Sequence record: PP886230.1
Reading direction: 5' to 3' (one strand)
Length of the DNA: 64,000 nucleotides
The translations under genes were made by a program, and so were the position numbers. Positions 1-64,000 of the stretch are shown piece after piece. Under the pieces are notes generated by a model that was given only the letters and a program-made list of their open reading frames with translations, ran no database searches and had not been told where the DNA came from. How positions within the stretch are numbered: position 1 is the stretch's first letter; every line of letters starts with the position of its first letter.

Positions 1-5
1 AGTAG

Positions 6-160
6 GCAGAGGAAGTCTGCCGTACTTTGTAGTTTCCAAGCTCCTTTTCCATTTTGTAAATTACATCAAATGTAATCAAAAGTAATCACGCAATGATTAG
101 TACTGAATTATTACTTTCACCTTAATTACAATTACCCTTTTACCCTTCGGGGTAAAATTC
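6..160. repeat. left-edge hairpins and short repeats
   Basis: GGCAGA-ggaag-TCTGCC at ~5-21; perfect TTTTACCC-TTCG-GGGTAAAA at ~138-157; repeated AATTACCC. Confidence 0.55.
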
Positions 161-400
161 AATTACCCCTTGAGGCTCCAGCAAAAAGTTGGTTAGTACT
201 CCATCCTAAATCTCGATCCTAAAAATTTTGGAGTACCTATGAAATAAAAGTTGGATCTTCGAAAGTTGAAATTTACGTTGGGACGTTTATGATTTGTGGG
301 ATATAATGATGTTTGTAGACGGGTAGTTCTCAAGAATATCAGTACTGAATGGTGAAAGAAAGTTATTGACATTATGATTCAGTACTGTATAATGTTTTAC

Positions 401-457
401 ATAGAGAGATGAGTTGCCGCAAACAATTCATTCACTCTACCTCCTGTCGTGAGACAG
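401..457 (+). ncRNA. candidate structured small RNA from the first promoter
   Basis: TTGACA(366)-16-TATAAT(388); long imperfect hairpin 402-439, then CTGTC-GTGA-GACAG (GNRA loop); no convincing ORF. Confidence 0.3.
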
Positions 458-795
458 TACAGAAAGATAGTTCCTCCAATGGGTGGTACATCTTTTTGAA
501 CCTCATATGAAAATTGTAATAACAGTACTGATATTAACAGAATGGTGTCAGTACTGATTTTAATCTAAAGCATTATGCCACCAGCACAAGCTGGTGGATT
601 CCCTCTAACAGTATTCAGTACTACATGATAGTCTTCATCCTCCTAGGGTAACATAGTGAGGGCTATGATGGCAGTACTGAATACTCCCTTTCAAAAGATA
701 GATCTATGGTATAGTACTGACGGATTTTGGGCGTAGTTACCCTGGATGGATTTTGGACGTAGATATGTCTAGCCCTCCAGAAGTCTGGAAGTAAA

Positions 796-901
796 GATGG
801 CTATCCATCTAGACGGCTAAACGGCTAGATTTCTGGATGGCTAGACGTTTGGACGGCTAAACGGCTAGATGGGTACACGTCTGGAAGTATAGACGGCTAA
901 A
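796..901. repeat. iteron-like RYGGCTAR repeat cluster (7 copies)
   Basis: GACGGCTAAACGGCTAGAT exact at 812-830 and 852-870, plus single units. Confidence 0.8.
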
Positions 902-1074
902 TCAAAATTTTATTTTGTTTTTCCAATAGTTCCCCTACCGCGTGGGGATAGTTTCCCCGCAGTATCTGAAGTTAGATTTTTCTGAATCTGGAATCATTAT
1001 CTTATAAACTGGGGGCAATGTCAACGGCCTGGCCGGATATTTTTAAAAATTTTTTCAGTACTGAATTTTGGGCG

Positions 1075-1115
1075 TAACTATGCACCCGATGGGCTTGAGT
1101 CTTTCTCGACTTGAT
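1075..1115 (-). ncRNA. CCC-ANN-GGGTG element
   Basis: motif 1083-1093 on minus strand behind TTGCTT-16-TATAAT (1149-1122). Confidence 0.4.
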
Positions 1116-1214
1116 GGAACTATTATACAGTACTGAAAAAATAAAGCAATACCCTGGAAGCAAAAAAGTTTTAATTAATTTGCTTGCTATCCTGGGCCGG
1201 ACTATGGTACTATA

Positions 1215-1270
1215 TTTCAGTACTGAGAAAGTGCGTTTACCTGCTAGGGTGCGGGAGTCTATCCTTTTTT
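1215..1270 (+). ncRNA. CCC-ANN-GGGTG element, degenerate copy
   Basis: CCTGCTAGGGTGCGGGAGTCTATCC; tail matches the 3180 copy. Confidence 0.25.
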
Positions 1271-1284
1271 TATATCTTGAATTT

Positions 1285-1330
1285 TGGACGGATCTTCCCA
1301 CCCCCTGGGGTATCCGCTTTCTCGCGTCTA
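1285..1330 (-). ncRNA. CCC-ANN-GGGTG element
   Basis: motif 1299-1309 on minus strand behind TTGACT-16-TATAAT (1365-1338). Confidence 0.4.
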
Positions 1331-1517
1331 TGTAGTAATTATACGCTTTTTCAGGATCAAGTCAATACCTAAAAACAAAATAATTGAAAATAATTTAACG
1401 CGTTTAAACGGCCCGTAACGCCCTGGATTGTTGGGAGTGGTGCAAATGTATAGCTTAGGTGTATTAATGCGTTAGAATGCGTCTGAGGCCGTTTTATGGG
1501 GTGTAGTAGTGATTTGG

Positions 1518-1610
1518 TTGATTCAGTACTGAATAATAGTACTCCTATATAGAAAGATAGTTCCCCTGGATTGATTCAGTACTGAATAATAGTACTCCTA
1601 TATAGAAAGA
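1518..1610. repeat. 40-bp direct repeat (2 copies, 53-bp period), two AGTACT sites per copy
   Basis: TTGATTCAGTACTGAATAATAGTACTCCTATATAGAAAGA at 1518-1557 and 1571-1610. Confidence 0.9.
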
Positions 1611-1724
1611 AAACTATTTTAAAAGTATTTGTAGAAAGTACTTGCACCGTACTGATAAAAGCGTATAATGTTTTACATCGAGAGCGGGAACACTTCCCGC
1701 TACACTTTAAGAGAGATTAATACG

Positions 1725-4392: not shown

Positions 4393-4480
4393 TAGAAAGT
4401 ACTTGCAATTAGTTTTTAGTACTGTATAATGTTTTACATAGAGGGGAGAAATGGTTCTCCCTGGTAATGAGGAAAATACA

Positions 4481-7343: not shown

Positions 7344-7424
7344 AAATATTATCACAGTACTATTGACATAGTTTGATAGTACTGGCATAATAACTTTTAT
7401 CAAGACAACTAAGAGGAAATTAAA

Positions 7425-8728: not shown

Positions 8729-8875
8729 ATGAAAGCATCAAAAAAGAGTACTAACAAGAAAGCACGTTCAACCTTAGATGGGGTATTCCCTTTACGTTTC
8801 GTTGATGAAGTGGTTTCCTACCCGCCTGGCCTTACTCCTGAGATGGTAGAAAGTTTGCGTAAATCTAAAAAATAG
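8729..8875 (+). CDS. small basic hypothetical protein
   Basis: promoter cassette; start moved from 8675. Confidence 0.7.
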   Translation: MKASKKSTNKKARSTLDGVFPLRFVDEVVSYPPGLTPEMVESLRKSKK

Positions 8876-8956
8876 TACTTGCAATTAGTTTTTAGTACTG
8901 TATAATGTTTTACATGAAGGGGAGAAATGATTCTCCCCAATAACAGGAGAAACAAA

Positions 8957-19955: not shown

Positions 19956-20146
19956 TGCGTAAAGGGATTTAGTACTGATTCAGAAAAAAGTCAAGGCGTT
20001 TTTAAAATTATGCGTTAAAAAAATGCATAGGTAATCCCTTGACTTTTTTGAAATAAAAGGGATTGGACTATGGCAAAATGCGTAGGGGGCTAAAGGGCGG
20101 GTAACCTTAGCGACTTCGATAAAGGGGTATTACGAATAAAATGTTA

Positions 20147-20174
20147 TTGATTTTTTATACGAATCGTATATTAT
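20147..20174 (+). promoter_or_regulatory. promoter upstream of the family A array
   Basis: TTGATT-16-TATTAT. Confidence 0.5.
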
Positions 20175-20204
20175 AGGATTGATATTATTTTTAATGGAGT
20201 CCCT

Positions 20205-20402
20205 ATGCGTATTTTAACTAAAGAACAGCACCACGAAAGACTTATCAATAACATGGCTATGATAATGTATAAGTCCCATGACCATGGTATTGCCTATAAG
20301 CGTGAATTAATTATGGCACTATTCATTGGAACTAACTTTCAGGAAAGGTATGTCAACGATTGGATTTGGTATTTAATTGAAGATATAACGAGTAAACTAT
20401 GA
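20205..20402 (+). CDS. family A paralog
   Basis: FIGTNFQE. Confidence 0.85.
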   Translation: MRILTKEQHHERLINNMAMIMYKSHDHGIAYKRELIMALFIGTNFQERYVNDWIWYLIEDITSKL

Positions 20403-20599
20403 AAATGCGTATTTTAAATAAAGAAGAATATCAATCACTGTTACGTAAAAACTTCACAAAGATTTATAATACAGACACACACGTAGAACGAATGGAGTTA
20501 TACCTTTTGATTACTTTGGGAACTAACTATCAGGAAAGATGGGTGATTCAATATATGGATACATTGAAAAATAAAATATTGTCCACGAGGAAACAATGA
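20399..20599 (+). CDS. family A paralog
   Basis: LGTNYQE. Confidence 0.85.
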   Translation: MKMRILNKEEYQSLLRKNFTKIYNTDTHVERMELYLLITLGTNYQERWVIQYMDTLKNKILSTRKQ

Positions 20600-20805
20600 A
20601 AACTATAACACGAACCCAATCATACGGTCTTATCTTGAAATACATGGACTTAATGGTGGATATCAGCAAAGACCTTCCTAAAACTGAAATTGAAGTTGCA
20701 AGAGCAGAGATCCGCATGTTGGCTGTACTGAACACAAACCATCAGGAAGAGTATGTTGACGATTGGATTCGATTTTTAATAGAAGATATTAAGAGTAAAC
20801 TATGA
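20596..20805 (+). CDS. family A paralog
   Basis: LNTNHQE. Confidence 0.85.
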   Translation: MKTITRTQSYGLILKYMDLMVDISKDLPKTEIEVARAEIRMLAVLNTNHQEEYVDDWIRFLIEDIKSKL

Positions 20806-21017
20806 TTATTATAGAAAACTCATATCAATATACTGAACGCATCGCTGCCAGACAACTTGAAATCCTCATAATATACGAAGAGACTTCTGATTTAAACTTA
20901 GCCGAGGTATTGGAAAATGATATACTATTGGGTGCATTCTTAGGAACAGACTATCAGAAGTATTATGAGGAAAAGTATTTGTCATCTCTTGAGAAATATA
21001 TCAGGAGCAAATTATGA
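20802..21017 (+). CDS. family A paralog
   Basis: LGTDYQK. Confidence 0.85.
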   Translation: MIIIENSYQYTERIAARQLEILIIYEETSDLNLAEVLENDILLGAFLGTDYQKYYEEKYLSSLEKYIRSKL

Positions 21018-21226
21018 TTTTTTTAACACCAGAAGAATATAAGAAACGTTTCAATTCCGCACAGGGTGAAATCTTACTTATATACCTTTCAAATGCAGAC
21101 CTTAACTTATCAAGGGTATTAGAAAAAGATTTACTTATGGGTGCATTCCTTGATACAGACTTTCAGGTGTATTATGTAGGGGAATACTTAATTGCACTTC
21201 AGAATTATATCAGGAGTAAACTATGA
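21014..21226 (+). CDS. family A paralog
   Basis: LDTDFQV. Confidence 0.85.
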   Translation: MIFLTPEEYKKRFNSAQGEILLIYLSNADLNLSRVLEKDLLMGAFLDTDFQVYYVGEYLIALQNYIRSKL

Positions 21227-21441
21227 AACATTTAAGTAATTACGAGAAGAATAAAATTATCGTTGCTGCAATAAACAAATATTTTACACTTCCTCACACA
21301 GAAGGTTTATGTGTAAGGGAACACAGGATAAACACCACCGATATACGCATGATGGCTGTACTGGGGACGAACTTTCAGGAAGAGTATGTTGTTGCACACA
21401 TAGTTGCCCTCACTGATCTAATAAGGGACAAATGTAAATGA
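21223..21441 (+). CDS. family A paralog
   Basis: LGTNFQE. Confidence 0.85.
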   Translation: MKHLSNYEKNKIIVAAINKYFTLPHTEGLCVREHRINTTDIRMMAVLGTNFQEEYVVAHIVALTDLIRDKCK

Positions 21442-21695
21442 AACACTTAACTGATGATGAATTTGAAACTATAATTCGTAAACTAACCCCCATCACAAGG
21501 ATAGTCTACGGTGACCCCAGCCTTACATGGAACCAAATGCGAGCTAAAGTTAATGAGCTATGGTTGCTGTACTTTATGGGGACTCAATATCAAGATAAGT
21601 TTTGCACAGAATATATCGAACAATTAACGAATGTTATACAGGATAAACTAGATGATTATTTGCTCACAAAACATGAAGACTTTATCAGGAGTTGA
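21438..21695 (+). CDS. family A paralog
   Basis: MGTQYQD. Confidence 0.85.
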   Translation: MKHLTDDEFETIIRKLTPITRIVYGDPSLTWNQMRAKVNELWLLYFMGTQYQDKFCTEYIEQLTNVIQDKLDDYLLTKHEDFIRS

Positions 21696-21924
21696 GTATC
21701 AAACTGCCCTATTCTCTTTAATCCATACCCTTAGAAAAAACAATGCCTTACATGGTGCACCTGAAGTGGATGTTATCAACGGTGAACTTTATCTTATGAA
21801 ATTCATTGGAACAAACTATCAAGATCTGTTCATTCAACGATACTTATCCGCATTAAGAAACCAAATCCAATATAAAACCATCAAGGCCAAAAAAGAATGG
21901 AATAAACAATGCGACAAAGACTAA
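21673..21924 (+). CDS. family A paralog
   Basis: IGTNYQD. Confidence 0.85.
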   Translation: MKTLSGVEYQTALFSLIHTLRKNNALHGAPEVDVINGELYLMKFIGTNYQDLFIQRYLSALRNQIQYKTIKAKKEWNKQCDKD

Positions 21925-22160
21925 ATCACAAAATGTATTGTAAACTATTGCAGACACTGGCACAGAAACACTATGACACTGTATCTGAAATATTACCCTA
22001 TGATATCATGCGTTTAATTCATAGTGAGGCAGAGATGCTTGTACTGATGACAGGCACTGATAAAAAAGCAATTGCCAAATCAATAGATATGTTCATCGAA
22101 GCACAATGTCAACACATTAGAACCGAGATATGGAGACGAGAGAATGATAACACTAAATGA
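21909..22160 (+). CDS. family A paralog (divergent)
   Basis: MTGTDKK. Confidence 0.75.
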   Translation: MRQRLNHKMYCKLLQTLAQKHYDTVSEILPYDIMRLIHSEAEMLVLMTGTDKKAIAKSIDMFIEAQCQHIRTEIWRRENDNTK

Positions 22161-22359
22161 GTTTCAGTATCATTGGAGGTTACAAACTATCAAATCAAAA
22201 GTGTATAGTATTGTGTTAAACAAATCTATTGCACAAGAGGACAAATGTGTTATAATAGCTGAAATGAAGTTGGGTGCTTTCGTAGGGACAAACTATCAAA
22301 ACATCTACACTGACGTATTGTTAAGTGCCTTACGTAACAAGGTGGTATCCAAAATATGA
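22144..22359 (+). CDS. family A paralog
   Basis: VGTNYQN. Confidence 0.85.
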   Translation: MITLNEFQYHWRLQTIKSKVYSIVLNKSIAQEDKCVIIAEMKLGAFVGTNYQNIYTDVLLSALRNKVVSKI

Positions 22360-22574
22360 GAAATTTACAAGGCTTTGAATACATCAGACTCCTGAAAACA
22401 TGCACCAGCAGAAGGAAAATCTTATCAAGCGATAAGAGCATCCAAGCTAACTTTAAGCACGCACTAGTAACTGAACTCTATGTAGGTGCACTCTTAGGCA
22501 CAAATTATCAACAAATGTATGTAGATCTATGGATTGACGCTCTACAGAAAGAGGTTAAAAGTAAATGCAAATGA
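22356..22574 (+). CDS. family A paralog
   Basis: LGTNYQQ. Confidence 0.85.
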   Translation: MRNLQGFEYIRLLKTCTSRRKILSSDKSIQANFKHALVTELYVGALLGTNYQQMYVDLWIDALQKEVKSKCK

Positions 22575-22783
22575 TTAATTTAAGTAAAGACGAATTTTAT
22601 GTTATACTGGCGAAAACTTATCCAGCACGTAAGGCCGTTTATGATAGTCACATTATTGAACCCTCAAAGAAGTTGATTTTAGTAAATGAGATAAAGATGC
22701 TTTCAGTCTTAGGAACAAACTATCAAGAGAATGCTGTACTGATGTTAATTGATGCCCTCCAGCGAGAGGTTAAACGTAAATGA
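22565..22783 (+). CDS. family A paralog
   Basis: LGTNYQE. Confidence 0.85.
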   Translation: MQMINLSKDEFYVILAKTYPARKAVYDSHIIEPSKKLILVNEIKMLSVLGTNYQENAVLMLIDALQREVKRK

Positions 22784-23010
22784 AAATGATTAATTTAACT
22801 TACCATGAATATCAAAAACGTTTAAATGCATCCAGAGATATAAGGATTCAAATATTCAATAACAAAAGATTGAAGCCTGATATCAGGAAAATCAAAATCA
22901 TAGAAGCCGTGTTGTGCAACTTCCTAGGGACTAACTATCAGGAAGGTAAGGTAGAAAACTATCTTATAGAACTCATGAATAGTATTGAAAATAAATGTAA
23001 GGGTAATTAA
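22780..23010 (+). CDS. family A paralog
   Basis: LGTNYQE. Confidence 0.85.
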   Translation: MKMINLTYHEYQKRLNASRDIRIQIFNNKRLKPDIRKIKIIEAVLCNFLGTNYQEGKVENYLIELMNSIENKCKGN

Positions 23011-23283
23011 CATGAAAATGATTAAATTATCTCAAGCAAAATATAAAGAACGCCTGGTAAAAATTGCACCTGGACTTAATGAAATCCATCACGGAGAAGT
23101 CATTAAACACGGAAATAAGATGATTATGAAACTTGAGTTAAAGGTGGGTGCATTCATAGGAACAAACTATCAGGAGTATTATGTAGATGAATACATAATC
23201 GCACTTAAGAGATACATTGGAAGAAAACTATATCTACAAACTAAAGAATAGTATTGAAAATAAATGTAAGGGTAATTAACATG
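22977..23283 (+). repeat. 38-bp direct repeat at family A gene junctions
   Basis: GAATAGTATTGAAAATAAATGTAAGGGTAATTAACATG at 22977-23014 and 23246-23283. Confidence 0.9.
23012..23251 (+). CDS. family A paralog
   Basis: IGTNYQE. Confidence 0.85.
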   Translation: MKMIKLSQAKYKERLVKIAPGLNEIHHGEVIKHGNKMIMKLELKVGAFIGTNYQEYYVDEYIIALKRYIGRKLYLQTKE

Positions 23284-23544
23284 CAAATGATCAATTTAAG
23301 TAAAGATGAATATACCGAGCGTATGACAAAAATTACGCACAAACGTAATACAATCTATCACAACCCAGAAATTCAACACAGTAAGAAAATGATTATGATG
23401 CGTGAGTTAAAGATGGGTGTATTCTTAGGAACAAACTATCAAGATACAGAAGTAAATCGCTTAATCGCGGAGTTACTACTGGAAATCAGAGGTAAGCTGT
23501 ACTTTCATCAAATGACCCAACCACTGAGGTGTACTAAGAAATGA
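23281..23544 (+). CDS. family A paralog
   Basis: LGTNYQD. Confidence 0.85.
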   Translation: MQMINLSKDEYTERMTKITHKRNTIYHNPEIQHSKKMIMMRELKMGVFLGTNYQDTEVNRLIAELLLEIRGKLYFHQMTQPLRCTKK

Positions 23545-23756
23545 TCAACATCACATTGCAAGAAAGATTCATCCGAATCAACTATGCAATTACCAAATTA
23601 GATGCTACTATAGGATTCCAAAGTCTACCATACAAAACCAGATTGTTATTAGAGTGTGAAGCTAAGTTGGGTGTACTATTAGGGACGCAACACCAACAAC
23701 GATATGTGGAAATCTGGATTGATCTTTTAACCCAGGATGTACATGAGAGAATGTAA
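23541..23756 (+). CDS. family A paralog
   Basis: LGTQHQQ. Confidence 0.85.
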   Translation: MINITLQERFIRINYAITKLDATIGFQSLPYKTRLLLECEAKLGVLLGTQHQQRYVEIWIDLLTQDVHERM

Positions 23757-24011
23757 ATGCAAAATGAAATGATATACTTAACCTATAATGAATACGTCGA
23801 GAGATTAGTTCGTGCCAAGAGATATACCAATAAACGTCCAATTGACCTAAACCAAACCCCTGCCGAAAGGAGTGCAGAAGTTTTATTCCAATCACTACCA
23901 TACCTTCTTGGAACTGATAGACAAGAGGAATATGTTGCACGTATGATTAGATATCTTAAAATCACTATTAAGGAAAAAGTAAATGCAAATGAAATACTTA
24001 ACAGACGATGA
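23757..24011 (+). CDS. family A paralog
   Basis: LGTDRQE. Confidence 0.85.
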   Translation: MQNEMIYLTYNEYVERLVRAKRYTNKRPIDLNQTPAERSAEVLFQSLPYLLGTDRQEEYVARMIRYLKITIKEKVNANEILNRR

Positions 24012-24234
24012 GTTAAAAGAACGACTAATTAAATCCAGAAAACTTACAAATCAACTTCCAAACGACACAAACAAGTCACATGCCGAAAGGAGTGCAGAAG
24101 TTTTATACATTCAACTCATGTACTTTCTTGGCACTGACAGACAAGAGTATTACATTGAAAGTATGCTTCGATATCTTAAATTCTCTATAAAGGAAAAGAT
24201 ACATGCTCAAGAATTTAAAAATCCTAACAGTTAA
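23983..24234 (+). CDS. family A paralog
   Basis: LGTDRQE; close to 23757. Confidence 0.85.
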   Translation: MQMKYLTDDELKERLIKSRKLTNQLPNDTNKSHAERSAEVLYIQLMYFLGTDRQEYYIESMLRYLKFSIKEKIHAQEFKNPNS

Positions 24235-24445
24235 TGAATATCATACGATTGTAATGAAAACTAATAGTGCAATTTCTAAAAAATCAAACCCAAAGTACAT
24301 ACTGGAACACACATTCGAAGAACGTCAATTAGCTTTAGTTGAAGCAAAACTTCTTGCACTCCTAGGAACAAACTATCAAGAAGAATACATCAGAAAACTA
24401 ATATACCTTTTAACTAAACATATAAGAAAAAGAAAAAATGCATGA
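24203..24445 (+). CDS. family A paralog
   Basis: LGTNYQE. Confidence 0.85.
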   Translation: MLKNLKILTVNEYHTIVMKTNSAISKKSNPKYILEHTFEERQLALVEAKLLALLGTNYQEEYIRKLIYLLTKHIRKRKNA

Positions 24446-24672
24446 AACACTTGACAGATGATGAACATGGGCTTATAGTAATGGATGTAATCAACATCGA
24501 ATACAAAAAGTTGATACGCTACCGTTGTTATGAAGATAAGCAACTCGTTCTAGCAGAACAGAAGTTGTTTCGACTCTTAAACACAAACTACCAAGCACAA
24601 TACGAAGAATCGTATATGTACCTTTTGGCGAGGAAAGCAAAAAGAGATTATGAAAATTTTAAGCGAAGGTGA
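24442..24672 (+). CDS. family A paralog
   Basis: LNTNYQA. Confidence 0.85.
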   Translation: MKHLTDDEHGLIVMDVINIEYKKLIRYRCYEDKQLVLAEQKLFRLLNTNYQAQYEESYMYLLARKAKRDYENFKRR

Positions 24673-24865
24673 TTCAGTAATATTACTTATAGAGAATGCA
24701 AGTAAATTCTTAAACATAACACTGTCTGATATAGATGATGATGACAAAGAAGTACTTAGAGCCGATTTAAGAGTTCTTTTATATGTTGGAACTAACTTAC
24801 AAGAGCAATACATTGAGGACTACATCAATGAACTTAAAGAATCAGTACTGAGAAAATGCAAATGA
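24650..24865 (+). CDS. family A paralog
   Basis: VGTNLQE. Confidence 0.85.
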   Translation: MKILSEGDSVILLIENASKFLNITLSDIDDDDKEVLRADLRVLLYVGTNLQEQYIEDYINELKESVLRKCK

Positions 24866-25095
24866 AAATCATTACAGAAGAAGAATACCTAACAATCATA
24901 AATGGACTGTTTTTGAAGTTATTTGCCATTAACACATCAAAACTACCAGATACTGATAAAATCATTAAGTTAAATGAAATCTACGTTCAAGCTACTCTAG
25001 GAACTAACTATCAAGAAGCCAATGTGTATAATTACATTAATACACTCAAAAGGGTAATACAATTAAAATGCACAAACATATACACAAACCCCTAG
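24856..25095 (+). CDS. family A paralog
   Basis: LGTNYQE. Confidence 0.85.
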   Translation: MQMKIITEEEYLTIINGLFLKLFAINTSKLPDTDKIIKLNEIYVQATLGTNYQEANVYNYINTLKRVIQLKCTNIYTNP

Positions 25096-25295
25096 GAACA
25101 GCAGAATACATTGAACTCATGGGATTACACTTCTCATCCTTTAAGAAACTGATGCAAGAATCAAATAATGATTTAGAATATCACATCAAAAGTTCAGATT
25201 TAAGATTGCTACTCACTCTAGGAACAGATTCCCAAGAGCGATTTGTCAATGAGCATATTAGAGCACTTTTAAATGGCATCAGGAATAAACTATGA
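25068..25295 (+). CDS. family A paralog
   Basis: LGTDSQE. Confidence 0.85.
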   Translation: MHKHIHKPLGTAEYIELMGLHFSSFKKLMQESNNDLEYHIKSSDLRLLLTLGTDSQERFVNEHIRALLNGIRNKL

Positions 25296-25507
25296 AGGAA
25301 ATATCAAATCAAGAGTACTTGGCACTATTCAGGAAGAATAATCACAAATATATGGCACTTGATTCAAGAACTGATATAAGTGAACTTGAAAAAAATCTTT
25401 TGCGTTCAGATATGATAGTACTGACACTCTTAGGAACACAGCATCAAGAGAGAACTGTTAATTCACACATAGGGATTCTTATGCAGATAGTACAGGAAAA
25501 GATATGA
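25292..25507 (+). CDS. family A paralog
   Basis: LGTQHQE. Confidence 0.85.
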   Translation: MKEISNQEYLALFRKNNHKYMALDSRTDISELEKNLLRSDMIVLTLLGTQHQERTVNSHIGILMQIVQEKI

Positions 25508-25725
25508 TAATCATAACACAACAAGATATTCTTAAGTTCACAAGGGTTCATGCATCTGAATTTGATGCTATATTATCAAAAAGTTACAACAACCCTTATA
25601 CACAAGATGTACATTACAGTGAATTATGGATGTATATACTTTTAGGTACAAATAAACAAGAGCAAGCAGTACAGAAGTATTTGACAGCTTTACGTGATGC
25701 TACTGCTAATGGAGTACATGTTTAA
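25504..25725 (+). CDS. family A paralog
   Basis: LGTNKQE. Confidence 0.85.
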   Translation: MIIITQQDILKFTRVHASEFDAILSKSYNNPYTQDVHYSELWMYILLGTNKQEQAVQKYLTALRDATANGVHV

Positions 25726-25726
25726 T

Positions 25727-25969
25727 ATGAAAGTACTGACAGAACTAGAAATGTATCATAGATTTAATAAGTACTATCATTTACTTAAGCCTATACAGAG
25801 GATTAAATGTCCATTTGAAGAGAAACAGGTTTTAATCTATGAGCACAAGTTCTTTGTATCATTAGGTACAGATCAACAAGAGTACTATTTGACGTTGTAC
25901 TTGATTACATTAATAGATTTAATTCACTATAAAACAAAACAAGCTAATAAAGAGAAATATGAAAACTAA
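25727..25969 (+). CDS. family A paralog
   Basis: LGTDQQE. Confidence 0.85.
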   Translation: MKVLTELEMYHRFNKYYHLLKPIQRIKCPFEEKQVLIYEHKFFVSLGTDQQEYYLTLYLITLIDLIHYKTKQANKEKYEN

Positions 25970-26303
25970 TATACAACTCAAGGTATATAAATCATTTGAA
26001 CATACATATATCAAAAGTAGTCTATGTAGAGATGTAATGGATTACAAGGGTAAGCCATTCACAATTACCTATGATTCTTATGTTAGTGATTTATATATAT
26101 CATTTGTTAATTACGAAAATAAAATATACAAGCACGTTGATATTAAAGATTTAAGTACTTTATCTGAAGAGGAATACTTTCAGGAATCATTAGTATGGGA
26201 TTTAGAGTTTCCTATGCCATTAGTACATAAGATGATAGTACTAATGAAAGAATCTAAACAGGAGCCTAATGGTGATTATGAAGAACACACAGTTGAGTAT
26301 TAA
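25959..26303 (+). CDS. family B paralog
   Basis: EEEYFQESLVWD. Confidence 0.85.
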   Translation: MKTNIQLKVYKSFEHTYIKSSLCRDVMDYKGKPFTITYDSYVSDLYISFVNYENKIYKHVDIKDLSTLSEEEYFQESLVWDLEFPMPLVHKMIVLMKESKQEPNGDYEEHTVEY

Positions 26304-26673
26304 AAGTACTGATAATATTAAGAGTTATACAAGCTCAAGTACTGTGACAATCGAAGTGAATTCTCTTAATGCTGGTAATACAGTAGATAAGTTCTTTATT
26401 GCTCAAGGGTACAGGAAAGATATTCATCAATATTGTTCAGTATATGGGGAGTACAATAGTACTGAAGATATAATTTATTGGTCAACACATCAAGATTATC
26501 TAACTAAAATTGGCGTTCCAGATGTTAGTACTTTATCTGAAGAAGAATACTTTCAGTACAGCTTAGTACATGATTTACCTATACCTTTAGGGTTAATCAA
26601 GGGTATACAGGAAGAGGTTCATAAGCTTAAATCCATGAGTAAAGGTACTTTCATTAGAACAGTGCAATACTAG
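26269..26673 (+). CDS. family B paralog
   Basis: EEEYFQYSLVHD. Confidence 0.85.
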   Translation: MVIMKNTQLSIKSTDNIKSYTSSSTVTIEVNSLNAGNTVDKFFIAQGYRKDIHQYCSVYGEYNSTEDIIYWSTHQDYLTKIGVPDVSTLSEEEYFQYSLVHDLPIPLGLIKGIQEEVHKLKSMSKGTFIRTVQY

Positions 26674-26674
26674 C

Positions 26675-26703
26675 TTGACAGTACTTTTCATTACTGATAT
26701 AGT
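26675..26703 (+). promoter_or_regulatory. sigma70 promoter
   Basis: TTGACA-17-TATAGT. Confidence 0.7.
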
Positions 26704-26732
26704 ACACTAACGTTAATCATAGGGTAAAAATT

Positions 26733-26978
26733 ATGTTAAATTTTTTAAATTTTCTTATCGTCTTGTGTATTGTTCTTGGGATTGCACCATTTGTATTGTA
26801 TTTCATGGATTCAGATGAAATGCAGAAGATGAATTGCACAAGGACAGGACAGAGTAGAGTAGAGACGATTCTTATGCCTGTTACGGTTATTGTTAACAAC
26901 ATGCCCATTACGAACATGGTCCCTACCCTAACGACAACGTACCAGTACTCTTGTACAGACGGAGAGAGGTGGAGATGA
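26733..26978 (+). CDS. single-pass membrane protein
   Basis: N-terminal hydrophobic FLIVLCIVLGIAPFVLYF. Confidence 0.75.
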   Translation: MLNFLNFLIVLCIVLGIAPFVLYFMDSDEMQKMNCTRTGQSRVETILMPVTVIVNNMPITNMVPTLTTTYQYSCTDGERWR

Positions 26979-27295
26979 AATTTAATATAGCAAAAACATC
27001 GAGTATATGTATTTTTGGTTATGCAGAAGAGTTAGGTGATATTGACATTCTTTTGTACAAAAAGGATGGTGTTATGCATTTCAAGTACCAGGATGAAGAG
27101 GCAGACAATTATCTTTTACCTAATTTAGTACAAATGCAGGAAGAGGAATTATTCCAGTACAGCTTAATATACGACATTGATATTTGCACGATGCCAGTAC
27201 TAATTAGTATTCAAAAAGTGATGCTCGATATGTATGATAAGCTAATACAAGGTACATCAGGGAGAATCATTGAAATCGATATACAAGACAATTAA
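26975..27295 (+). CDS. family B paralog
   Basis: EEELFQYSLIYD. Confidence 0.85.
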   Translation: MKFNIAKTSSICIFGYAEELGDIDILLYKKDGVMHFKYQDEEADNYLLPNLVQMQEEELFQYSLIYDIDICTMPVLISIQKVMLDMYDKLIQGTSGRIIEIDIQDN

Positions 27296-27488
27296 TCAAG
27301 AATGGAAGACCCAAAAGTACAGGGAATTCAACAGGAATTTTACAAAAGATGCATTGAATTTAAAAACAACAGAGTTTGATATGTTTATTTTTCTTGGAAC
27401 ACGTTCACAAGAACAATTTGTTCATTATTATATAAATTCGTTGCGAACGGAGATAGTATGCAAAACACAGGGTATTATAAAAAGGTAA
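27270..27488 (+). CDS. family A paralog
   Basis: FLGTRSQE. Confidence 0.8.
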   Translation: MKSIYKTINQEWKTQKYREFNRNFTKDALNLKTTEFDMFIFLGTRSQEQFVHYYINSLRTEIVCKTQGIIKR

Positions 27489-27724
27489 ACCAATATTTGT
27501 ACGCTACAAAGTACAGGGATTTTTGTTTAAAGGGTGGTGATGAAGATTTTTCTTTGCGATTATCAGAATTTAATCTGTTATTTTATCTTGGTACAAAAGA
27601 ACAAGAAGAAATGGCACAGAAATTTATCAAGCACCTTGTACAAAAAATTAATATGCAAATTTTGATGCTTAAGATACAGAATGAGATAAATGAATATGAA
27701 TCCAGAAATAGTTCAGGATCTTAA
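27458..27724 (+). CDS. family A paralog
   Basis: YLGTKEQE. Confidence 0.8.
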   Translation: MQNTGYYKKVNQYLYATKYRDFCLKGGDEDFSLRLSEFNLLFYLGTKEQEEMAQKFIKHLVQKINMQILMLKIQNEINEYESRNSSGS

Positions 27725-28082
27725 AAAAGTAATATTTCTTTTGAATACCAGAAGTGAATTGTATACAGAGTTAAAAGAGATTAATGCATTTTATCAGAAT
27801 TTTGTAATCCAAGAGATCAGTGATTTAATTACAGATGCATTATTTGAATTATCGGAGAAATACAAAGGTTCAGAGTTCAGTGTTAAGAATGTTATTCGTC
27901 CAAGTGCAAGGAAAATTATATTATCACATTTTACATTTGACAATAAAGATTTATTCAGTCATAATCCAAGTACAGCTTTATATTTTATTCCTGATTCAGA
28001 CAAAAATCATCCTATTCATTACGGATGGATTTTGTCATATATAGTACAAGGAAAGGAGTATCCTATTAAATGGAAAGATTAG
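27690..28082 (+). CDS. hypothetical protein
   Basis: coupled in array. Confidence 0.75.
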   Translation: MNMNPEIVQDLKKVIFLLNTRSELYTELKEINAFYQNFVIQEISDLITDALFELSEKYKGSEFSVKNVIRPSARKIILSHFTFDNKDLFSHNPSTALYFIPDSDKNHPIHYGWILSYIVQGKEYPIKWKD

Positions 28083-28231
28083 GGCGATTAGATTATTACA
28101 CAATTAATACAAATTATTTGTTGCGTAATATAAAATCCGATTACAAAATATGGATAAAGAACAGAGATAGCATGTGTTATGAATTTTATTTAGATTATGC
28201 TATCAAACGATTTTTAAGAGAAGAACATTAA
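28070..28231 (+). CDS. small hypothetical protein (53 aa)
   Basis: AAGGAG RBS; TAATG-coupled; below track cutoff. Confidence 0.6.
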   Translation: MERLGRLDYYTINTNYLLRNIKSDYKIWIKNRDSMCYEFYLDYAIKRFLREEH

Positions 28232-28434
28232 TGCAAAAGATTAATACGATAACATTAAATGCATTACAGGATTCATTATTAGATAGTATTAAGATGTATT
28301 ACAATATACATTTGAAGGGTGGTATTGATAATTACGATTATTATTTGAGTTTAATTACATTTGAGCACCTTTCAGTACAGGACAGGATTTTACATCCTAC
28401 AAATCCTAGGTATCCATCGATAGGTAAATTATGA
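28231..28434 (+). CDS. hypothetical protein
   Basis: coupled in array. Confidence 0.7.
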   Translation: MQKINTITLNALQDSLLDSIKMYYNIHLKGGIDNYDYYLSLITFEHLSVQDRILHPTNPRYPSIGKL

Positions 28435-28979
28435 ATGAGATAGAGTTATTAGCACACAAGATAAGTACAATAATGCTTATCCTCAATAACAACCATCCTA
28501 TATCGCATATAGATGGAATCCTGAGTCAGAGGACAGGTGGTAGTTTATATTTGTCCATAAACGCAGATATCGCAAGGAAATACATTGATATCGATGTTGA
28601 AATCGAATATGATACAACGGGGATTGTTGATGTAGGTGCATTAATCAGTTCAAATCCAGTATCAGCATCCCCATTGACCAAAGATGTTAGTACAGGATTC
28701 GAAGGATATTTGTGGTACAATACCAATGATGATTATTTTATATATCAGCATTCCAATACAAATTATGATGAAGACAAATTTCAGTTCATAGACCCTTATG
28801 ATGAAGCTGGCGTATTCCAACAATCATTAATCACAAAACCGCATGAGATGATGTATCTAATGTTATTCAGTACAATGCATTTGAATTCATTAATTAAAGG
28901 TTTAAAATTTTATATTCAATTAAATTTAGTCCATGTAGTTTATGATTTATTAATGCAAGGATATAGTTATGAAGTATAA
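28431..28979 (+). CDS. family B paralog
   Basis: EAGVFQQSLIT. Confidence 0.8.
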   Translation: MNEIELLAHKISTIMLILNNNHPISHIDGILSQRTGGSLYLSINADIARKYIDIDVEIEYDTTGIVDVGALISSNPVSASPLTKDVSTGFEGYLWYNTNDDYFIYQHSNTNYDEDKFQFIDPYDEAGVFQQSLITKPHEMMYLMLFSTMHLNSLIKGLKFYIQLNLVHVVYDLLMQGYSYEV

Positions 28980-29280
28980 AATGATGTATACCCCAGATAT
29001 GATTTATGTTGAATTAGAAGATGATGACGATGGGTGGAATTTGATTTATTCAAGAAGTTCAGGTTGGTACATGGCACATTTAAATGATTCGATAGTTACA
29101 GATTATTTTGTAGATTTCAATACATTATCCGATGAAGAATTGTTCCAACAGCAATTAGTGATTGACACGGGTGGTTATGATGTCTTATTATTAAAAAAGA
29201 TACAGAAAGCTGTTATTGATTTTAAGCCCATGATATGGCAAAGGAAATATTATGACCTCGAAGTACCGTACCAGCAATGA
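28969..29280 (+). CDS. family B paralog
   Basis: DEELFQQQLVID. Confidence 0.85.
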   Translation: MKYKMMYTPDMIYVELEDDDDGWNLIYSRSSGWYMAHLNDSIVTDYFVDFNTLSDEELFQQQLVIDTGGYDVLLLKKIQKAVIDFKPMIWQRKYYDLEVPYQQ

Positions 29281-30631: not shown

Positions 30632-30657
30632 GATATGGGCTTTTTTTCGTTTTGGTA

Positions 30658-33440: not shown

Positions 33441-33450
33441 GGAAAGTACA

Positions 33451-33993: not shown

Positions 33994-34015
33994 TGTATGA
34001 TTATGTGATGGTATA

Positions 34016-34590: not shown

Positions 34591-34788
34591 AGACGTTTCG
34601 TTTTGACAGGCCGCAGGGGGGGGTCAAAAAAATTTCCGCTGAAAAACATGCTAAGGTATATGTTTAATATAAAGTTTTATATTGTGTTTTTCAGAGTACA
34701 GTTCATGTTTCTTGAAACAAAAAATACCCCGCCGCCGAACGTTCTCCTTATATTGGAGTTTACCTTATTAATTATAGTAGAGATTAAG

Positions 34789-35166
34789 ATGGAAATAAAA
34801 TATAATGAATTTTGTGCAAGGACATGGATGTACACTGGTGAGTTAGTTACGCACTCTAACTTATACAAGGGTGATTTAAACTACGCTAGGGACAAGATTT
34901 TAAAGTACTGGAATGCTGACTTTTATTTGATGGATTTTAGTACTGGGTTTAGGGGTAAAGCAACCGAGATGTTGGACTATACAGTACTTGATGATGCTGC
35001 ACTGTTTCAGGAGGCATTAGTATTTGATAAGAAGTACATCTGTACATTAGAAGAGATGATTGAATTACAGCGTAGAATTAAATGTATTCACAGGGAATGT
35101 ATAGATATCTGGTGCAGTACTGGTGAAGATAATTTTTGTAATCATTTCAATCTAGGGGAAGTGTGA
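34789..35166 (+). CDS. family B paralog
   Basis: DAALFQEALVFD; start moved from 34603. Confidence 0.85.
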   Translation: MEIKYNEFCARTWMYTGELVTHSNLYKGDLNYARDKILKYWNADFYLMDFSTGFRGKATEMLDYTVLDDAALFQEALVFDKKYICTLEEMIELQRRIKCIHRECIDIWCSTGEDNFCNHFNLGEV

Positions 35167-58552: not shown

Positions 58553-59074
58553 ATGTCGAAGAAGGATACTTCGAACAAACATTCAGTACACTTCAGTACT
58601 GGTAAAGATAACTGGACAACTCCAAAAGATTTCTTTGAAGAGTTAGATGAGTTATGGGGATTTACGCTTGATGCTGCTTGTGTTGATGAGACTGCATTAT
58701 GTGAGAATTATTTTACACCAAATGATGATTCTCTTTCACAGGATTGGGGAAAGAATATAGTTTGGTTGAACCCTCCATATAGTGATTTGAAAACATGGTT
58801 ATCTAAAGCAGTAGATGCGTATAATAAAGGGGCAACTGTATTAATTCTTGTACCATCAAGAACGGATACTATAGCTTTTCAGGATTATGCTGCGAAAGTT
58901 TGTGATTGTATTTGTTTTATTAAGGGAAGGTTACGATTTGGTATCCCAGAAGAACCAGAGAAGAAAACAGATTCAGCACCATTTCCTTCGTGTCTGATAG
59001 TACTAGATAAGTACTTAACCACTGCTAAAATCAATTATCTTAAATCTCTTGGATTGGTGATGAAGAATTTATGA
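58553..59074 (+). CDS. dam: DNA N6-adenine methyltransferase, phage T1/HP1 Dam-like family
   Basis: WTTPKDFF, FTLDAAC, DSLSQDW, VWLNPPYS (motif IV), LVPSRTDT; target sequence unknown. Confidence 0.9.
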   Translation: MSKKDTSNKHSVHFSTGKDNWTTPKDFFEELDELWGFTLDAACVDETALCENYFTPNDDSLSQDWGKNIVWLNPPYSDLKTWLSKAVDAYNKGATVLILVPSRTDTIAFQDYAAKVCDCICFIKGRLRFGIPEEPEKKTDSAPFPSCLIVLDKYLTTAKINYLKSLGLVMKNL

Positions 59075-61360: not shown

Positions 61361-61662
61361 ATTTAAATGATATACAATTCACTTATAAGATCCTATATGA
61401 TTTGTATGATGTATACCTTGTTAGTAACAACATAGGTTCACATAACCCATACAAAGAACAACCATTTATTGATTTATATATTGAGTACTTAGATTCAGTA
61501 GGTGAATATATAAAAAAGAATTACAGTACTTTTATCGATGGAAATGATATATTCGAGTTCTCTGGAGTTAAATCATACAATGGGATTATCCATGTTGAAT
61601 TTCTTGAAATAACCGATAGGGGATTTATCGAGATTAAAGTTGTGAAGTTGGTGAATTTATAA
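61351..61662 (+). CDS. family C paralog
   Basis: IQFTYKILYDL. Confidence 0.8.
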   Translation: MGLNLNDIQFTYKILYDLYDVYLVSNNIGSHNPYKEQPFIDLYIEYLDSVGEYIKKNYSTFIDGNDIFEFSGVKSYNGIIHVEFLEITDRGFIEIKVVKLVNL

Positions 61663-61672
61663 GAGGTTACAT

Positions 61673-61984
61673 ATGTTATTAAATGATATACAATTCACAT
61701 ACAAATTTTTGTATATCCAATACGCTACGGTTGATGCTGGAGAATATCTCTACAGTGAAATCTATCGTTCGGTATGGATAAAGTTTTTGGATGAATTACA
61801 TGAATATTACCATGATTTGTGTATAGTTCGTGATAATAAAATATACAAATTTCGCGATATTGTTAGTCATAGCGGTAAGCTACGATTGGAATTAAGTACT
61901 GATAGTGATGTTGATTGGATTGGTGTAAATTTACTGGAATTGAAGAATGAAAAACAACTTAAAGGAAATACAAGTATTTTATAA
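61673..61984 (+). CDS. family C paralog
   Basis: IQFTYKFLY. Confidence 0.8.
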   Translation: MLLNDIQFTYKFLYIQYATVDAGEYLYSEIYRSVWIKFLDELHEYYHDLCIVRDNKIYKFRDIVSHSGKLRLELSTDSDVDWIGVNLLELKNEKQLKGNTSIL

Positions 61985-62231
61985 ATTCTTATACTTATCA
62001 TATGTAAAAGATGAGTACTATGAAAGTGTATATTATTTTTTATGGCAACATTACCGTACTATAGTAAGAGATTTATATATAGGAAAATCTATCATATCCA
62101 ATGGTGAAAAATGTATCTGTACGGATGTAGTTAGTTTTAATGGTTCTTTAACACTGTGTTTCAGATGCGATAATAATAGTGGGTCATTTTCATTAAACGT
62201 ATATCAGTTAGAAGGAATAAATTTTGAATAA
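61947..62231 (+). CDS. family C paralog
   Basis: IQVFYKFLY. Confidence 0.8.
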   Translation: MKNNLKEIQVFYKFLYLSYVKDEYYESVYYFLWQHYRTIVRDLYIGKSIISNGEKCICTDVVSFNGSLTLCFRCDNNSGSFSLNVYQLEGINFE

Positions 62232-62424
62232 ATGTCCATATTGTAACAGTACTCAATTAGCTCGTTTCCGTTTAGATTCAGACTGGGCGACTGGTGCTGG
62301 TGATTTCTTCCCTATTAATGATGATGCAGAATACACCGAAGAACAGCACAAAGATTTTGATAAATCATGGCGACCTGACATTGAGTGCATTTATTGCCTT
62401 AATTGTGAGCGTGTTCATGACTAA
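62224..62424 (+). CDS. small zinc-ribbon protein
   Basis: CPYC...CLNC. Confidence 0.7.
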   Translation: MNKCPYCNSTQLARFRLDSDWATGAGDFFPINDDAEYTEEQHKDFDKSWRPDIECIYCLNCERVHD

Positions 62425-62680
62425 AGCTGAACTAATAGTTCATACATATAAAATGATATCAAGTACTGAGTTATCATATAGTGCAGATAATCCAGTACTG
62501 GATTATTTTGTTGAATTATTGAAAGAGCATTATATTGGTAAATCACTGATTCTTAATAATATTAATTTCACGGTAAAGGATGTAGCACCTGGAAAAAACG
62601 TACTAATAGTATGTGTTACTTCATCTGATAACCCAGTATACCCAATATCAATAATTTTTGAGATATTAGGAGATTTATGA
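62417..62680 (+). CDS. family C paralog
   Basis: IVHTYKMI; start moved from 62294. Confidence 0.75.
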   Translation: MTKAELIVHTYKMISSTELSYSADNPVLDYFVELLKEHYIGKSLILNNINFTVKDVAPGKNVLIVCVTSSDNPVYPISIIFEILGDL

Positions 62681-62967
62681 ATATCATTTTAATGCAGAAA
62701 ACATATGCTATATTGGTGAAAGATTATTCCATTACTTTCGATTCACAAGAAAGTGCTCTACATAACCTATACAAAAACGTAACACAAGAATACAGAAATA
62801 TGTTTTCTGACTTAGTAGTAGGAAGGTATTTCAGTACTAGAAAATACCCAAAACTTCAAATAGTTGATGTTTCTTTTTATTTCAATGGTCATATTACTAT
62901 TCATAGTTTAGACCAAGATTCAACAACGTACTTAAACTTTTCATTTGATGAGGTAACATTTTTATGA
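62677..62967 (+). CDS. family C paralog
   Basis: MQKTYAILVKD. Confidence 0.75.
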   Translation: MNIILMQKTYAILVKDYSITFDSQESALHNLYKNVTQEYRNMFSDLVVGRYFSTRKYPKLQIVDVSFYFNGHITIHSLDQDSTTYLNFSFDEVTFL

Positions 62968-63140
62968 GAACAGTATTTTTTATCTGGAGTCTTTTTTCAT
63001 TGGCAGTACTGACAGTATGTGGGATTTGTTTCCTTTCATCAATTAATACTTGGTATATCAATTTACTATTTCCATTTGTCGGTGTTGGTTTAGGGTTTAC
63101 TTTGCATAGTGTATGTAAGGATTACAATGAGAACAAATGA
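62964..63140 (+). CDS. small two-TM membrane protein (58 aa)
   Basis: GAGG RBS, ATGA-coupled, two hydrophobic segments. Confidence 0.6.
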   Translation: MRTVFFIWSLFSLAVLTVCGICFLSSINTWYINLLFPFVGVGLGFTLHSVCKDYNENK

Positions 63141-63405
63141 AGTACTTATTGCTGAAACAATGAAGATGATTTACAATATCACGTCAGCACAGAATATGCC
63201 CTATCCAACTAAGTCTTTATTGAGGACTGTGTATCTGGGGATAGTACAGGAGTACTACAAATCCAAGCACCGAAGCATTATTAGTGTTTATCGTGATTAT
63301 GAAAGGATTCGTATTTTATTCTGGAACAAGAATCGAGTACGTTCTGAATGTGACCTAGTGGACTTTAAATTAGAGAATCTTTATTGCTATAAACAGGGAC
63401 AATAG
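63127..63405 (+). CDS. family C-like paralog
   Basis: IAETMKMIYNI. Confidence 0.65.
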   Translation: MRTNEVLIAETMKMIYNITSAQNMPYPTKSLLRTVYLGIVQEYYKSKHRSIISVYRDYERIRILFWNKNRVRSECDLVDFKLENLYCYKQGQ

Positions 63406-63463
63406 TTTAATTCATGATATAATAATGGGTAAGGAACAATAATTAACACAAGGAGTGTGTGAA

Positions 63464-64000
63464 ATGCTTGACCGTATCCGTTTCGCTACAGAGATGGCGA
63501 ATGAATTAAACATGGCAAATTTCCAAATGTTAACATCAGTAATGGCTGAACATGCATGTGCTTATTCTGTAAGTGGTGTGCAGTGTGGTCAGGAGAATAT
63601 GTTAGCAGATGTTTATAGTGAAGTGCAAAGTAAGCAATATAGTGTAAAGACATATAAGGATAAGTTTGTTAGTCTTTATATGAACGAAGATATTGCCGAA
63701 GACCGTAAATTCACTGATTTTATTATTGAACGCCGAGTATCAGGTGTATCTAATCCTAATGCATCAAGCGAGGAAGTTTTTGCAGAAGTACTGAAAGATA
63801 TATACGAAAATGAATTAAAAAGTAAGAATCATTACAATGTACGTGAAACTAACACAGTGCTCTTGGGATATGATGAAGACGAAGAATACTATTATTTTCG
63901 TATGACTGAAGTTCCTTTTGAATACAAATCTCCATATACAACTACAGTGAAAGAATTTACTGAAAAAAGTAAAAACTTCATGAAGCATGAAGGAAATCGT
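63464..64000 (+). CDS. hypothetical protein, truncated by the window end; possible PD-(D/E)xK nuclease-like
   Basis: AAGGAG RBS, open to the end; EHA...LADV...YSVK pattern. Confidence 0.55.
   Translation, partial: MLDRIRFATEMANELNMANFQMLTSVMAEHACAYSVSGVQCGQENMLADVYSEVQSKQYSVKTYKDKFVSLYMNEDIAEDRKFTDFIIERRVSGVSNPNASSEEVFAEVLKDIYENELKSKNHYNVRETNTVLLGYDEDEEYYYFRMTEVPFEYKSPYTTTVKEFTEKSKNFMKHEGNR

Follow-up and report, generated by a model that had tools for sequence, protein, structure and literature searches.

Phages are expected to shed short palindromes. Why, then, is one of them, AGTACT, driven up about 8-fold in a jumbo phage, kept across several jumbo-phage genera, and allowed to reshape the dipeptide usage of the encoded proteins? 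We addressed this question in a stretch of 64,000 nucleotides (here called the window) that is identical to bases 1 to 64,000 of Escherichia phage vB_EcoM_E9.1 (PP886230.1; 367,851 bp), a jumbo myovirus closely related to 121Q, PBECO4, G17, and SP27 (genus Asteriusvirus, RaK2-like group). An initial inspection of the letters alone (the sequence-only reading) had described AGTACT as a selected, genome-wide mark. Nearly all window genes lie on the plus strand. The genome carries a direct terminal repeat of 20.1 kb, whose left copy opens the window; the early genes are therefore listed twice in the record. The right copy starts at genome position 347,745, and the 16,256 bp of it that were compared match the left copy exactly. 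Genome-wide analyses covered 364 kb of vB_EcoM_E9.1, and the non-redundant (i.e., unique) genome amounts to 348 kb. The sites and the repeat are as follows.

1..64000, strand-symmetric: field of 250 AGTACT sites, with the consensus H-AGTACT-D, the preferred form CAGTACTG, and the extended form TTCAGTACTGAA
1..20107, plus strand: left copy of the direct terminal repeat, in which dozens of small early genes each have a sigma70-type promoter and a 5' hairpin of their own

The 250 copies of AGTACT in the window compare with 21.4 expected from base composition and 17.1 expected under a first-order Markov model, the two models used for expected counts. The preferred form CAGTACTG occurs 60 times (0.6 to 0.7 expected), and the inner tetramer GTAC occurs 567 times (about 198 expected). 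AGTACT is by far the most frequent 6-bp palindrome of the window, in which 22 of the 64 palindromic hexamers are missing altogether; usual palindrome avoidance is therefore at work in this genome. The excess extends to the whole of the non-redundant genome (897 copies versus about 118 expected; 7.6-fold; about one site per 390 bp), where every 5-kb bin except those at 20 to 35 kb holds at least four copies. The three most enriched hexamers of the genome are CAGTAC and GTACTG (about 9-fold) and AGTACT itself, its one-mismatch neighbors are enriched 2.2-fold at most, and 67% of all AGTAC are followed by T. No one-mismatch neighbor was depleted in the genome hexamer counts, as repair-driven conversion would leave it, and a very-short-patch type of repair was rejected on this ground.

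The local counts given by the sequence-only reading, 17 copies in positions 1 to 2000 and 13 between 35.9 and 38.2 kb, proved exact. Its statement that the enrichment is window-wide holds in part: the enrichment is real but not uniform, with zero sites in 19,977 to 24,750 and 27,202 to 34,903 (see below for these deserts). Coding sequences hold 172 sites (3.1 per kb) and intergenic DNA holds 76 (8.1 per kb). The terminal repeat averages 6.6 sites per kb, rising to 10.8 per kb in its intergenic DNA; away from the early regions, intergenic DNA shows no excess over coding DNA. Outside the deserts, gaps between sites are slightly more even than random (coefficient of variation of 0.91 versus 1.00 +/- 0.04); the longest measures 2.1 kb, where 2.3 to 4.0 kb would be expected.

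Codon usage does not account for these numbers. We shuffled synonymous codons within each gene 300 times and obtained 48.3 +/- 5.9 coding copies of AGTACT (maximum of 64), versus the 172 observed (z = 21); for CAGTACTG, 5.6 were obtained and 40 were observed. This null model is generous because codon usage has already been shaped by the motif. Codon-aware shuffling had been set beforehand as the refuting test of the sequence-only reading, and the enrichment persisted through it. The sites are spread over all three coding frames (70, 42, and 60), and the three dipeptides that the frames spell, which that reading had pointed out, are over-used: Ser-Thr (ST) occurs 121 times versus 71 expected, Val-Leu (VL) 156 versus 96, and Gln-Tyr (QY) 76 versus 39. 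EY is also over-used, and the reversed dipeptides TS, LV, and YQ stand at expectation. Among the 121 Ser-Thr pairs, 70 are written AGT-ACT (16 expected). The pressure for AGTACT reaches the protein level, bending both codon and dipeptide usage. AGT is the commonest Ser codon, ACA and ACT dominate for Thr, and the phage tRNA set (genome positions 285.0 to 290.1 kb) includes Ser(GCU), which reads AGU, and Thr(UGU); the codons of these two tRNAs are among those inflated by the motif.

Comparison with relatives indicates that the sites are maintained. We compared the conservation of AGTACT with that of background hexamers in 121Q (93% identity) and ph0011 (86% identity). Coding sites were conserved in 86% versus 74% of cases in 121Q and in 74% versus 50% in ph0011; intergenic sites were conserved in 95% versus 71% and 92% versus 72%, respectively. 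The spread of the trait was surveyed in 21-kb samples around the capsid gene of IMG/VR contigs. Where the capsid was at least 85% identical (85 to 92% in the enriched contigs), AGTACT was the top or a near-top palindrome (25 to 45 copies versus about 7). A sample with a capsid 72% identical showed a weaker enrichment (14 versus 4.6), and relatives with capsids 64 to 69% identical were all at chance level in their 21-kb samples. Serratia phage BF (Eneladusvirus) carries 86 copies in 41 kb (14 expected). As the enrichment is common to Asteriusvirus, phage BF, and the contigs of at least 85% capsid identity and is at chance level at 64 to 69%, the trait originated at the root of the enterobacterial RaK2-like clade, and it is retained across genera of that clade. 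The survival of the codon shuffle, the conservation above background in two relatives, and the sharing among genera all support the proposal, made in the sequence-only reading, of a selected genome-wide mark.

The site is larger than the hexamer. The base before AGTACT is C in 43 to 45% of cases and the base after it is G in 46 to 51%, whereas G before and C after are depleted (G directly precedes the core at 92 of 897 sites, about 10%); the preferences are alike in coding and intergenic DNA. Phage BF likewise avoids G before and C after the core. The longer form TCAGTACTGA occurs 46 times (about 0.4 expected), and TTCAGTACTGAA occurs 14 times. The site is a graded 12-bp palindrome, TTC-AGTACT-GAA, i.e., dyad symmetric with graded flanks in the manner of a set of operators.

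Placement within early promoters has the same character. Small genes follow one another along the terminal repeat, each introduced by a near-consensus sigma70 promoter and then a GC-rich 5' hairpin, and we collected from this repeat 35 promoters of the form TTGNNN-N16-18-TAnAAT. The sequence-only reading had placed AGTACT at fixed promoter positions, and the set agrees: relative to the -10 hexamer, 17 of the 35 promoters have a site start at -27 and 11 have one at -7 (28 site positions in all). In the -27 placement the last T of AGTACT is the first T of the -35 element (AGTAC-TTGCAA), with a variant AGTACT-A-TTGACA; the -7 placement reads AGTACT-G-TATAAT. The site centers thus fall at about -37, on the upstream edge of the -35 element, and at about -17, abutting the -10 element, as is expected of operators lying over core promoter elements. 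Several promoters carry both sites, 20 to 22 bp apart (about two helical turns), and the pairs listed in the sequence-only reading (4398/4418, 7356/7378, and 8874/8894) were confirmed to the base.

4398..4430, plus strand: two-site early promoter, with AGTAC-TTGCAA (-35), a second AGTACT 20 bp on (start to start), and then G-TATAAT (-10)
7356..7391, plus strand: early promoter with AGTACT-A-TTGACA, a second AGTACT 22 bp on (start to start), and then GG-CATAAT
8874..8906, plus strand: two-site early promoter of the type found at 4398, with sites 20 bp apart
1..1660, no strand: left terminus, largely non-coding, with 17 AGTACT, mostly in the extended form (T)TCAGTACTGA(A)

Most early promoters between 2,100 and 19,300 are also followed, just upstream of the ribosome-binding site, by a conserved GGGGA-loop-TCCCC hairpin (e.g., at 2140 to 2190, 4270 to 4300, and 8780 to 8830). 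These units resemble the promoter-early-stem-loop cassettes of T4-type phages. The left terminus contains a duplicated 40-nt unit (1518 to 1557 and 1571 to 1610) with two AGTACT per copy; short repeats spaced by 16 bp occur at 830 to 888, and the small open reading frames annotated in the terminus look doubtful. At the other end of the genome, a TTCAGTACTGA site (genome positions 347,715 to 347,744) lies 12 bp before the right repeat boundary and may be relevant to end formation.

The two site-free deserts differ in kind.

19977..24750, plus strand: desert 1, with zero AGTACT and GTAC at chance level (12 copies)
24751..27201, plus strand: island between the deserts, with 16 AGTACT, holding the later members of an array of approximately 70-amino-acid paralogues
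27202..34833, plus strand: ACT-free zone (desert 2), with about 22 genes without assigned function and with AGTACA in place of AGTACT

A tandem array that comprises 26 diverged genes of about 70 amino acids (median identity of 34%) and reaches 27.5 kb falls for the most part in desert 1. Nine of the 12 GTAC of this desert lie in TGTACT, which may reflect conserved positions in the paralogue family. Both deserts are kept in 121Q and, less strictly, in ph0011, and are therefore not artifacts; a sequencing or basecalling error at a modified motif was rejected as well, since the deserts and the AGTACA substitution recur in these two independently sequenced phages.

Desert 2 is defined by the loss of a trinucleotide. 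Between 27,199 and 34,834 (7,635 bp), ACT is absent from the plus (coding) strand, where about 146 copies are expected. The next largest ACT gap in the 364 kb is 444 bp, and the gap score of ACT is 16.8 versus 2.6 for the next trinucleotide. AGT, which is ACT on the opposite strand, is normal in the zone (25 per kb). None of the 108 Thr codons is ACT, the codon junctions NAC-T and NNA-CTN are all avoided, and TCT is low (0.38 of the reference rate). Other banned words of two to five letters proved to be just composition effects in large minus-strand tail-fiber genes. GTAC is still enriched in the zone (69 copies) and is never followed by T. AGTACA occurs 41 times (5.4 per kb; about 3 copies expected) and is found in each of the three frames; C precedes it at 19 of the 41 sites, as it does AGTACT elsewhere. 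Relative to neighboring DNA, AGTAC is as dense (5.8 versus 5.4 per kb) and GTACT is lost (0 versus 4.7 per kb); the base after AGTAC is A in 41 cases, C in 2, and G in 1. AGTACA is conserved in ph0011 in 48% of cases versus 29% for background.

The ban is being actively kept. Zone sequences of 121Q and vB_EcoM_E9.1 differ by 440 substitutions, yet 121Q has no ACT over 7,511 bp; when the same 440 substitutions were placed randomly, 20 ACT appeared on average and never fewer than 8 (1000 trials). In ph0011, the zone has about 19 to 24 ACT versus about 51 simulated, and 5 of its approximately 20 ACT lie inside AGTACT. The absence in 121Q and the deficit in ph0011 show that the ban is under continuing selection. 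Because AGTACT and TGTACT both contain ACT, both are forbidden under the ban, which leaves AGTACA as the nearest allowed form. This zone, too, is under pressure for AGTACT-like sites, subject to a second, overriding constraint.

Other origins of the AGTACA sites were considered and rejected. AGTACA is not a decay product of AGTACT: decay between relatives goes mostly to AGTTCT, a change that would be synonymous in the Val-Leu frame, and AGTACA also stands in non-synonymous Val-Gln and Val-His contexts in unrelated genes. Paralogy is not the cause of the AGTACA enrichment, as the zone genes are not detectable paralogues by BLASTP. An effect of a replication origin or of the lagging strand on the opposite orientations of deserts 1 and 2 was dropped, as the ACT ban explains desert 2. 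Pfam and PHROG scans of the zone proteins assigned no function, and no homologues of a zone gene were found in IMG/VR outside Asteriusvirus. A terminator-like hairpin with a T-run at 30,619 to 30,686 is directly followed by a near-consensus promoter (TTGACA-17-TATCAT with TG), and the zone may consist of two transcription units.

We tentatively favor, among the explanations considered, a reading in which AGTACT is the site of a putative dimeric DNA-binding factor, specific to the clade, that marks the genome and occludes early promoters. A symmetric dimer as reader is suggested by the graded 12-bp dyad symmetry, the identical flank rules in coding and non-coding DNA, and the operator-like promoter positions, and by the clustering at the genome end, the near-even coverage, and the use of the same word across genera, which points to a conserved core factor. 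Extended sites are dense in the non-coding left terminus and one lies next to the right repeat boundary, and AGTACA replaces AGTACT in the ACT-free zone at a similar density and with the same preceding C; both observations are consistent with such a factor. The factor, conserved in the enterobacterial RaK2-like jumbo-phage clade, would read double-stranded (T)(T)C-AGTACT-G(A)(A) as a symmetric dimer. Bound at the -35 and -10 sites, it would compete with RNA polymerase, so that early transcription would be shut off or gated; bound at the many intragenic sites, it could mark, coat, or organize the phage chromosome. The steps that lead from this anatomy to a repressor and an organizer are ones that we infer. 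The upkeep of AGTACT would imply an important sequence-reading factor in a group in which most genes have no assigned function, and its discovery would provide a handle on early-gene timing and on the organization of a 368-kb chromosome.

Several observations weigh against this interpretation. The sequence-only reading had named an early-gene-repressing or DNA-organizing protein as one candidate; the graded dyad and the operator-like positions fit such a protein, but no binding protein emerged, as annotation and Pfam scans of candidates revealed no helix-turn-helix regulator. The sharpness of the exact hexamer fits restriction-modification enzymes better than transcription factors. The factor gives no reason why the banned ACT should be half of the palindrome (a coincidence of about 3% by chance), and it does not explain desert 1. 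Finally, the early promoters are related copies, and shared descent could partly account for the regularity of the fixed positions.

Known genome-wide binding proteins offer partial parallels to the putative factor. TF1 of SPO1 and p6 of phi29 are genome-wide phage DNA-binding proteins that also repress early promoters, with loose sequence or shape preferences. The likeness lies in the early promoters clustered in the terminal repeat, which carry sites for what would be the same protein that binds the whole genome; the differences are that the AGTACT core is an exact hexamer and that no homologous protein was identified. The closest match in form is the sequence bound by Escherichia coli SlmA, GTGAGTACTCAC, a 12-bp palindrome with a central AGTACT that is read by a dimeric TetR-type protein at sites spread over the chromosome (PMC3020112). 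In each half-site, SlmA requires G at position 1, T at position 2, and a purine at position 3, followed by A and G, whereas the phage prefers T, T, and C at positions 1 to 3 and avoids G beside the core. Recruitment of the host SlmA was rejected, as GTRAGYRCTYAC has no match in 348 kb and G next to the core is depleted. Resemblances to the half-sites of LexA and TrpR were discarded because the spacing does not fit. The site is not a polar motif of the Chi or KOPS type with a strand-skewed orientation, since AGTACT is its own reverse complement; the only oriented stretch is that of AGTACA in the ACT-free zone, and this follows from the ban.

The link between the palindrome and the ban is the strength of a rival explanation that we nevertheless regard as doubtful. 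Here, the working unit would be strand specific and would contain ACT (GTACT in single-stranded DNA, or GUACU or ACU in RNA), and it would be read by a nuclease, a primase, or an enzyme of that sort; through the palindrome, both strands would carry the unit, and the ACT-free zone would escape the enzyme on one strand. Enzymes specific for trinucleotides include MqsR (GCU), MazF (ACA), T4 endonuclease IV (TCA), and the chlorella-virus Nt.CviPII (CCD). The one trinucleotide that shows an anomalous gap in the 364 kb is precisely half of AGT-ACT, a match that would arise about 3% of the time by chance, and both the selective loss of GTACT in the zone at unchanged AGTAC density and the continuing selection in 121Q (0 ACT versus 20 simulated) are as this explanation would have them. 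However, the finding that 67% of AGTAC are followed by T is a much tighter coupling than two independent strand signals would need, the symmetric flank preferences indicate duplex recognition, and the fixed promoter sites lie in untranscribed DNA. ACT outside AGTACT occurs at about chance frequency genome-wide (an estimate from the counts), and the ban by itself suffices to orient AGTACA in the zone, as TGTACT contains ACT.

The zone considered by itself resembles transcripts that resist mRNA interferases, such as the GCU-less mqsR mRNA and the ACA-less mRNAs resistant to MazF. As in those cases, one trinucleotide is wholly absent from the coding strand in all frames and the opposite strand is unaffected; the difference is one of scale, about 22 genes and 7.6 kb. 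We know of no ACU-specific ribonuclease; none was found in the Pfam and PHROG scans of the zone proteins or by a literature search on ACU-specific RNases. The block would be a clean signature of a trinucleotide-specific activity during infection, from which about 22 genes are protected with unusual care.

The palindrome and the ACT-free zone could also be two faces of one phage system, a view that is speculative and on balance unlikely. A clade-specific factor would have ACT as its elementary unit and would read AGT-ACT on duplex DNA as a dimer, serving as genome mark and early-promoter gate; on single-stranded RNA or DNA, individual ACT units would be the target of the factor or of a partner enzyme, and the erasure of every coding-strand ACT would exempt the 7.6-kb block with its approximately 22 genes. 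If true, this would amount to a sequence-encoded distinction between "protected" and "exposed" phage genes, for which, to our knowledge, there is no phage precedent.

A modified base is the next candidate, and it involves the following gene.

58553..59074, plus strand: Dam-family (PF05869) DNA adenine methyltransferase of 173 amino acids, identified by a Pfam scan

In this quite unlikely explanation, AGTACT is the target of a phage DNA modification, and the modified site serves as a mark, either for self versus non-self discrimination or for methylation-dependent promoter control, a role that has been proposed for the cyanobacterial HIP1. The exact hexamer stands far above its neighbors, with a sharpness like that of restriction-modification enzymes; two DNA methyltransferases are encoded, the second being a short C5 enzyme closest to DNMT3; and about 1000 sites for ScaI and its isoschizomers would be a liability unless protected. 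AGTACT shares its word with ScaI-type targets, and its center with those of the RsaI/CviQI type (GTAC), together with the sharp hexamer specificity. Targets of type II restriction-modification systems are exact words without flank preferences that phages avoid, whereas AGTACT is enriched 7.6-fold and has flank preferences, and no cognate enzyme was found.

The sequence-only reading had suggested AGTACT as the target of the methyltransferase at 58553, and we consider it unlikely that this enzyme acts on the site. It is an ordinary PF05869 protein with homologues in more than 2000 phage records, mostly outside the clade (e.g., Stx-converting phages and Klebsiella phages of 40 to 66 kb), a figure that reflects the occurrence of the protein only. 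In the related phage RaK2, which likewise has two methyltransferases, bisulfite sequencing showed CpG methylation, and the only enzymes to digest the DNA were ones tolerant of Dam, Dcm, CpG, and EcoKI methylation (PMC3622015). AGTACT contains neither GATC nor CpG. Additionally, flank preferences that extend out to 12 bp are unexpected for a methyltransferase or restriction target, and no neighboring hexamer is depleted as by repair-driven conversion.

The same considerations limit the comparison with HIP1 made in the sequence-only reading. HIP1 is reportedly the highly iterated palindrome of cyanobacteria, GCGATCGC, treated by Elhai in 2015. AGTACT resembles it in being a short palindrome that is over-represented many-fold throughout the genome, in all coding frames and in non-coding DNA beyond the effect of codon usage, and in being kept beyond neutral expectation. 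It differs in belonging to a phage clade and not to a cellular genome, in its AT-rich core, in its 12-bp flank preferences and fixed promoter positions, and in that no cognate methyltransferase target was found inside it; the specificity of the Dam-family and DNMT3-like enzymes is not readable from their sequences. The analogy is apt as a description and probably fails as a mechanism.

We regard as very unlikely the proposal that AGTACT is the preferred site of a dyad-symmetric phage enzyme, e.g., a topoisomerase II of the T4 type (making 4-base staggered cuts at A^GTAC^T) or a recombination or packaging nuclease, with a high density of sites aiding the replication, decatenation, or packaging of the 368-kb genome. 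Its attractions are the dyad-symmetric site with a 4-bp center, the even genome spread, a conservation across genera such as core machinery would show, and the presence of phage genes for topoisomerase II subunits, an SbcCD-like nuclease, and endonuclease VII. It leaves the fixed early-promoter positions without a reason, and the consensus sites of topoisomerases are loose, unlike this exact hexamer.

A neutral origin, whether from codon usage, from bias in mutation or gene conversion, or from the spread of repeated promoter cassettes, is extremely improbable, for although the early promoters are clearly related copies and paralogous gene families are common in the window, the enrichment stands at z = 21 against codon-aware shuffles, extends to every coding frame and to genes unrelated to one another throughout the 348 kb, is intragenic at 172 of the 250 sites, and is conserved above background with no depleted neighbor hexamers.

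Literature searches found neither the AGTACT enrichment nor the trinucleotide-free block described for this phage group, and those on AGTACT and CAGTACTG in phages and on the promoters, transcriptomes, and restriction of Asteriusvirus and RaK2 returned nothing on either feature. The palindrome extends the highly iterated kind to a virus, with promoter-embedded copies and with no cognate methyltransferase that we could find. The ACT ban may be the more novel feature and perhaps the more original finding, as it appears to have just loose analogues in motif-less mRNAs that escape mRNA interferases.

Two other words were noted in the course of the counts. GATC is at about chance level in the terminal repeat (16 to 28 per 5 kb) and about two-fold depleted elsewhere in the genome. 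The E. coli Chi octamer, GCTGGTGG, occurs in 17 copies, with 13 copies of its complement, in the whole genome (about 1.2 expected each), and CTGGTG and TGGTGG rank among the top enriched hexamers in several members of the clade; this excess could represent Chi mimicry or a codon-pair effect.

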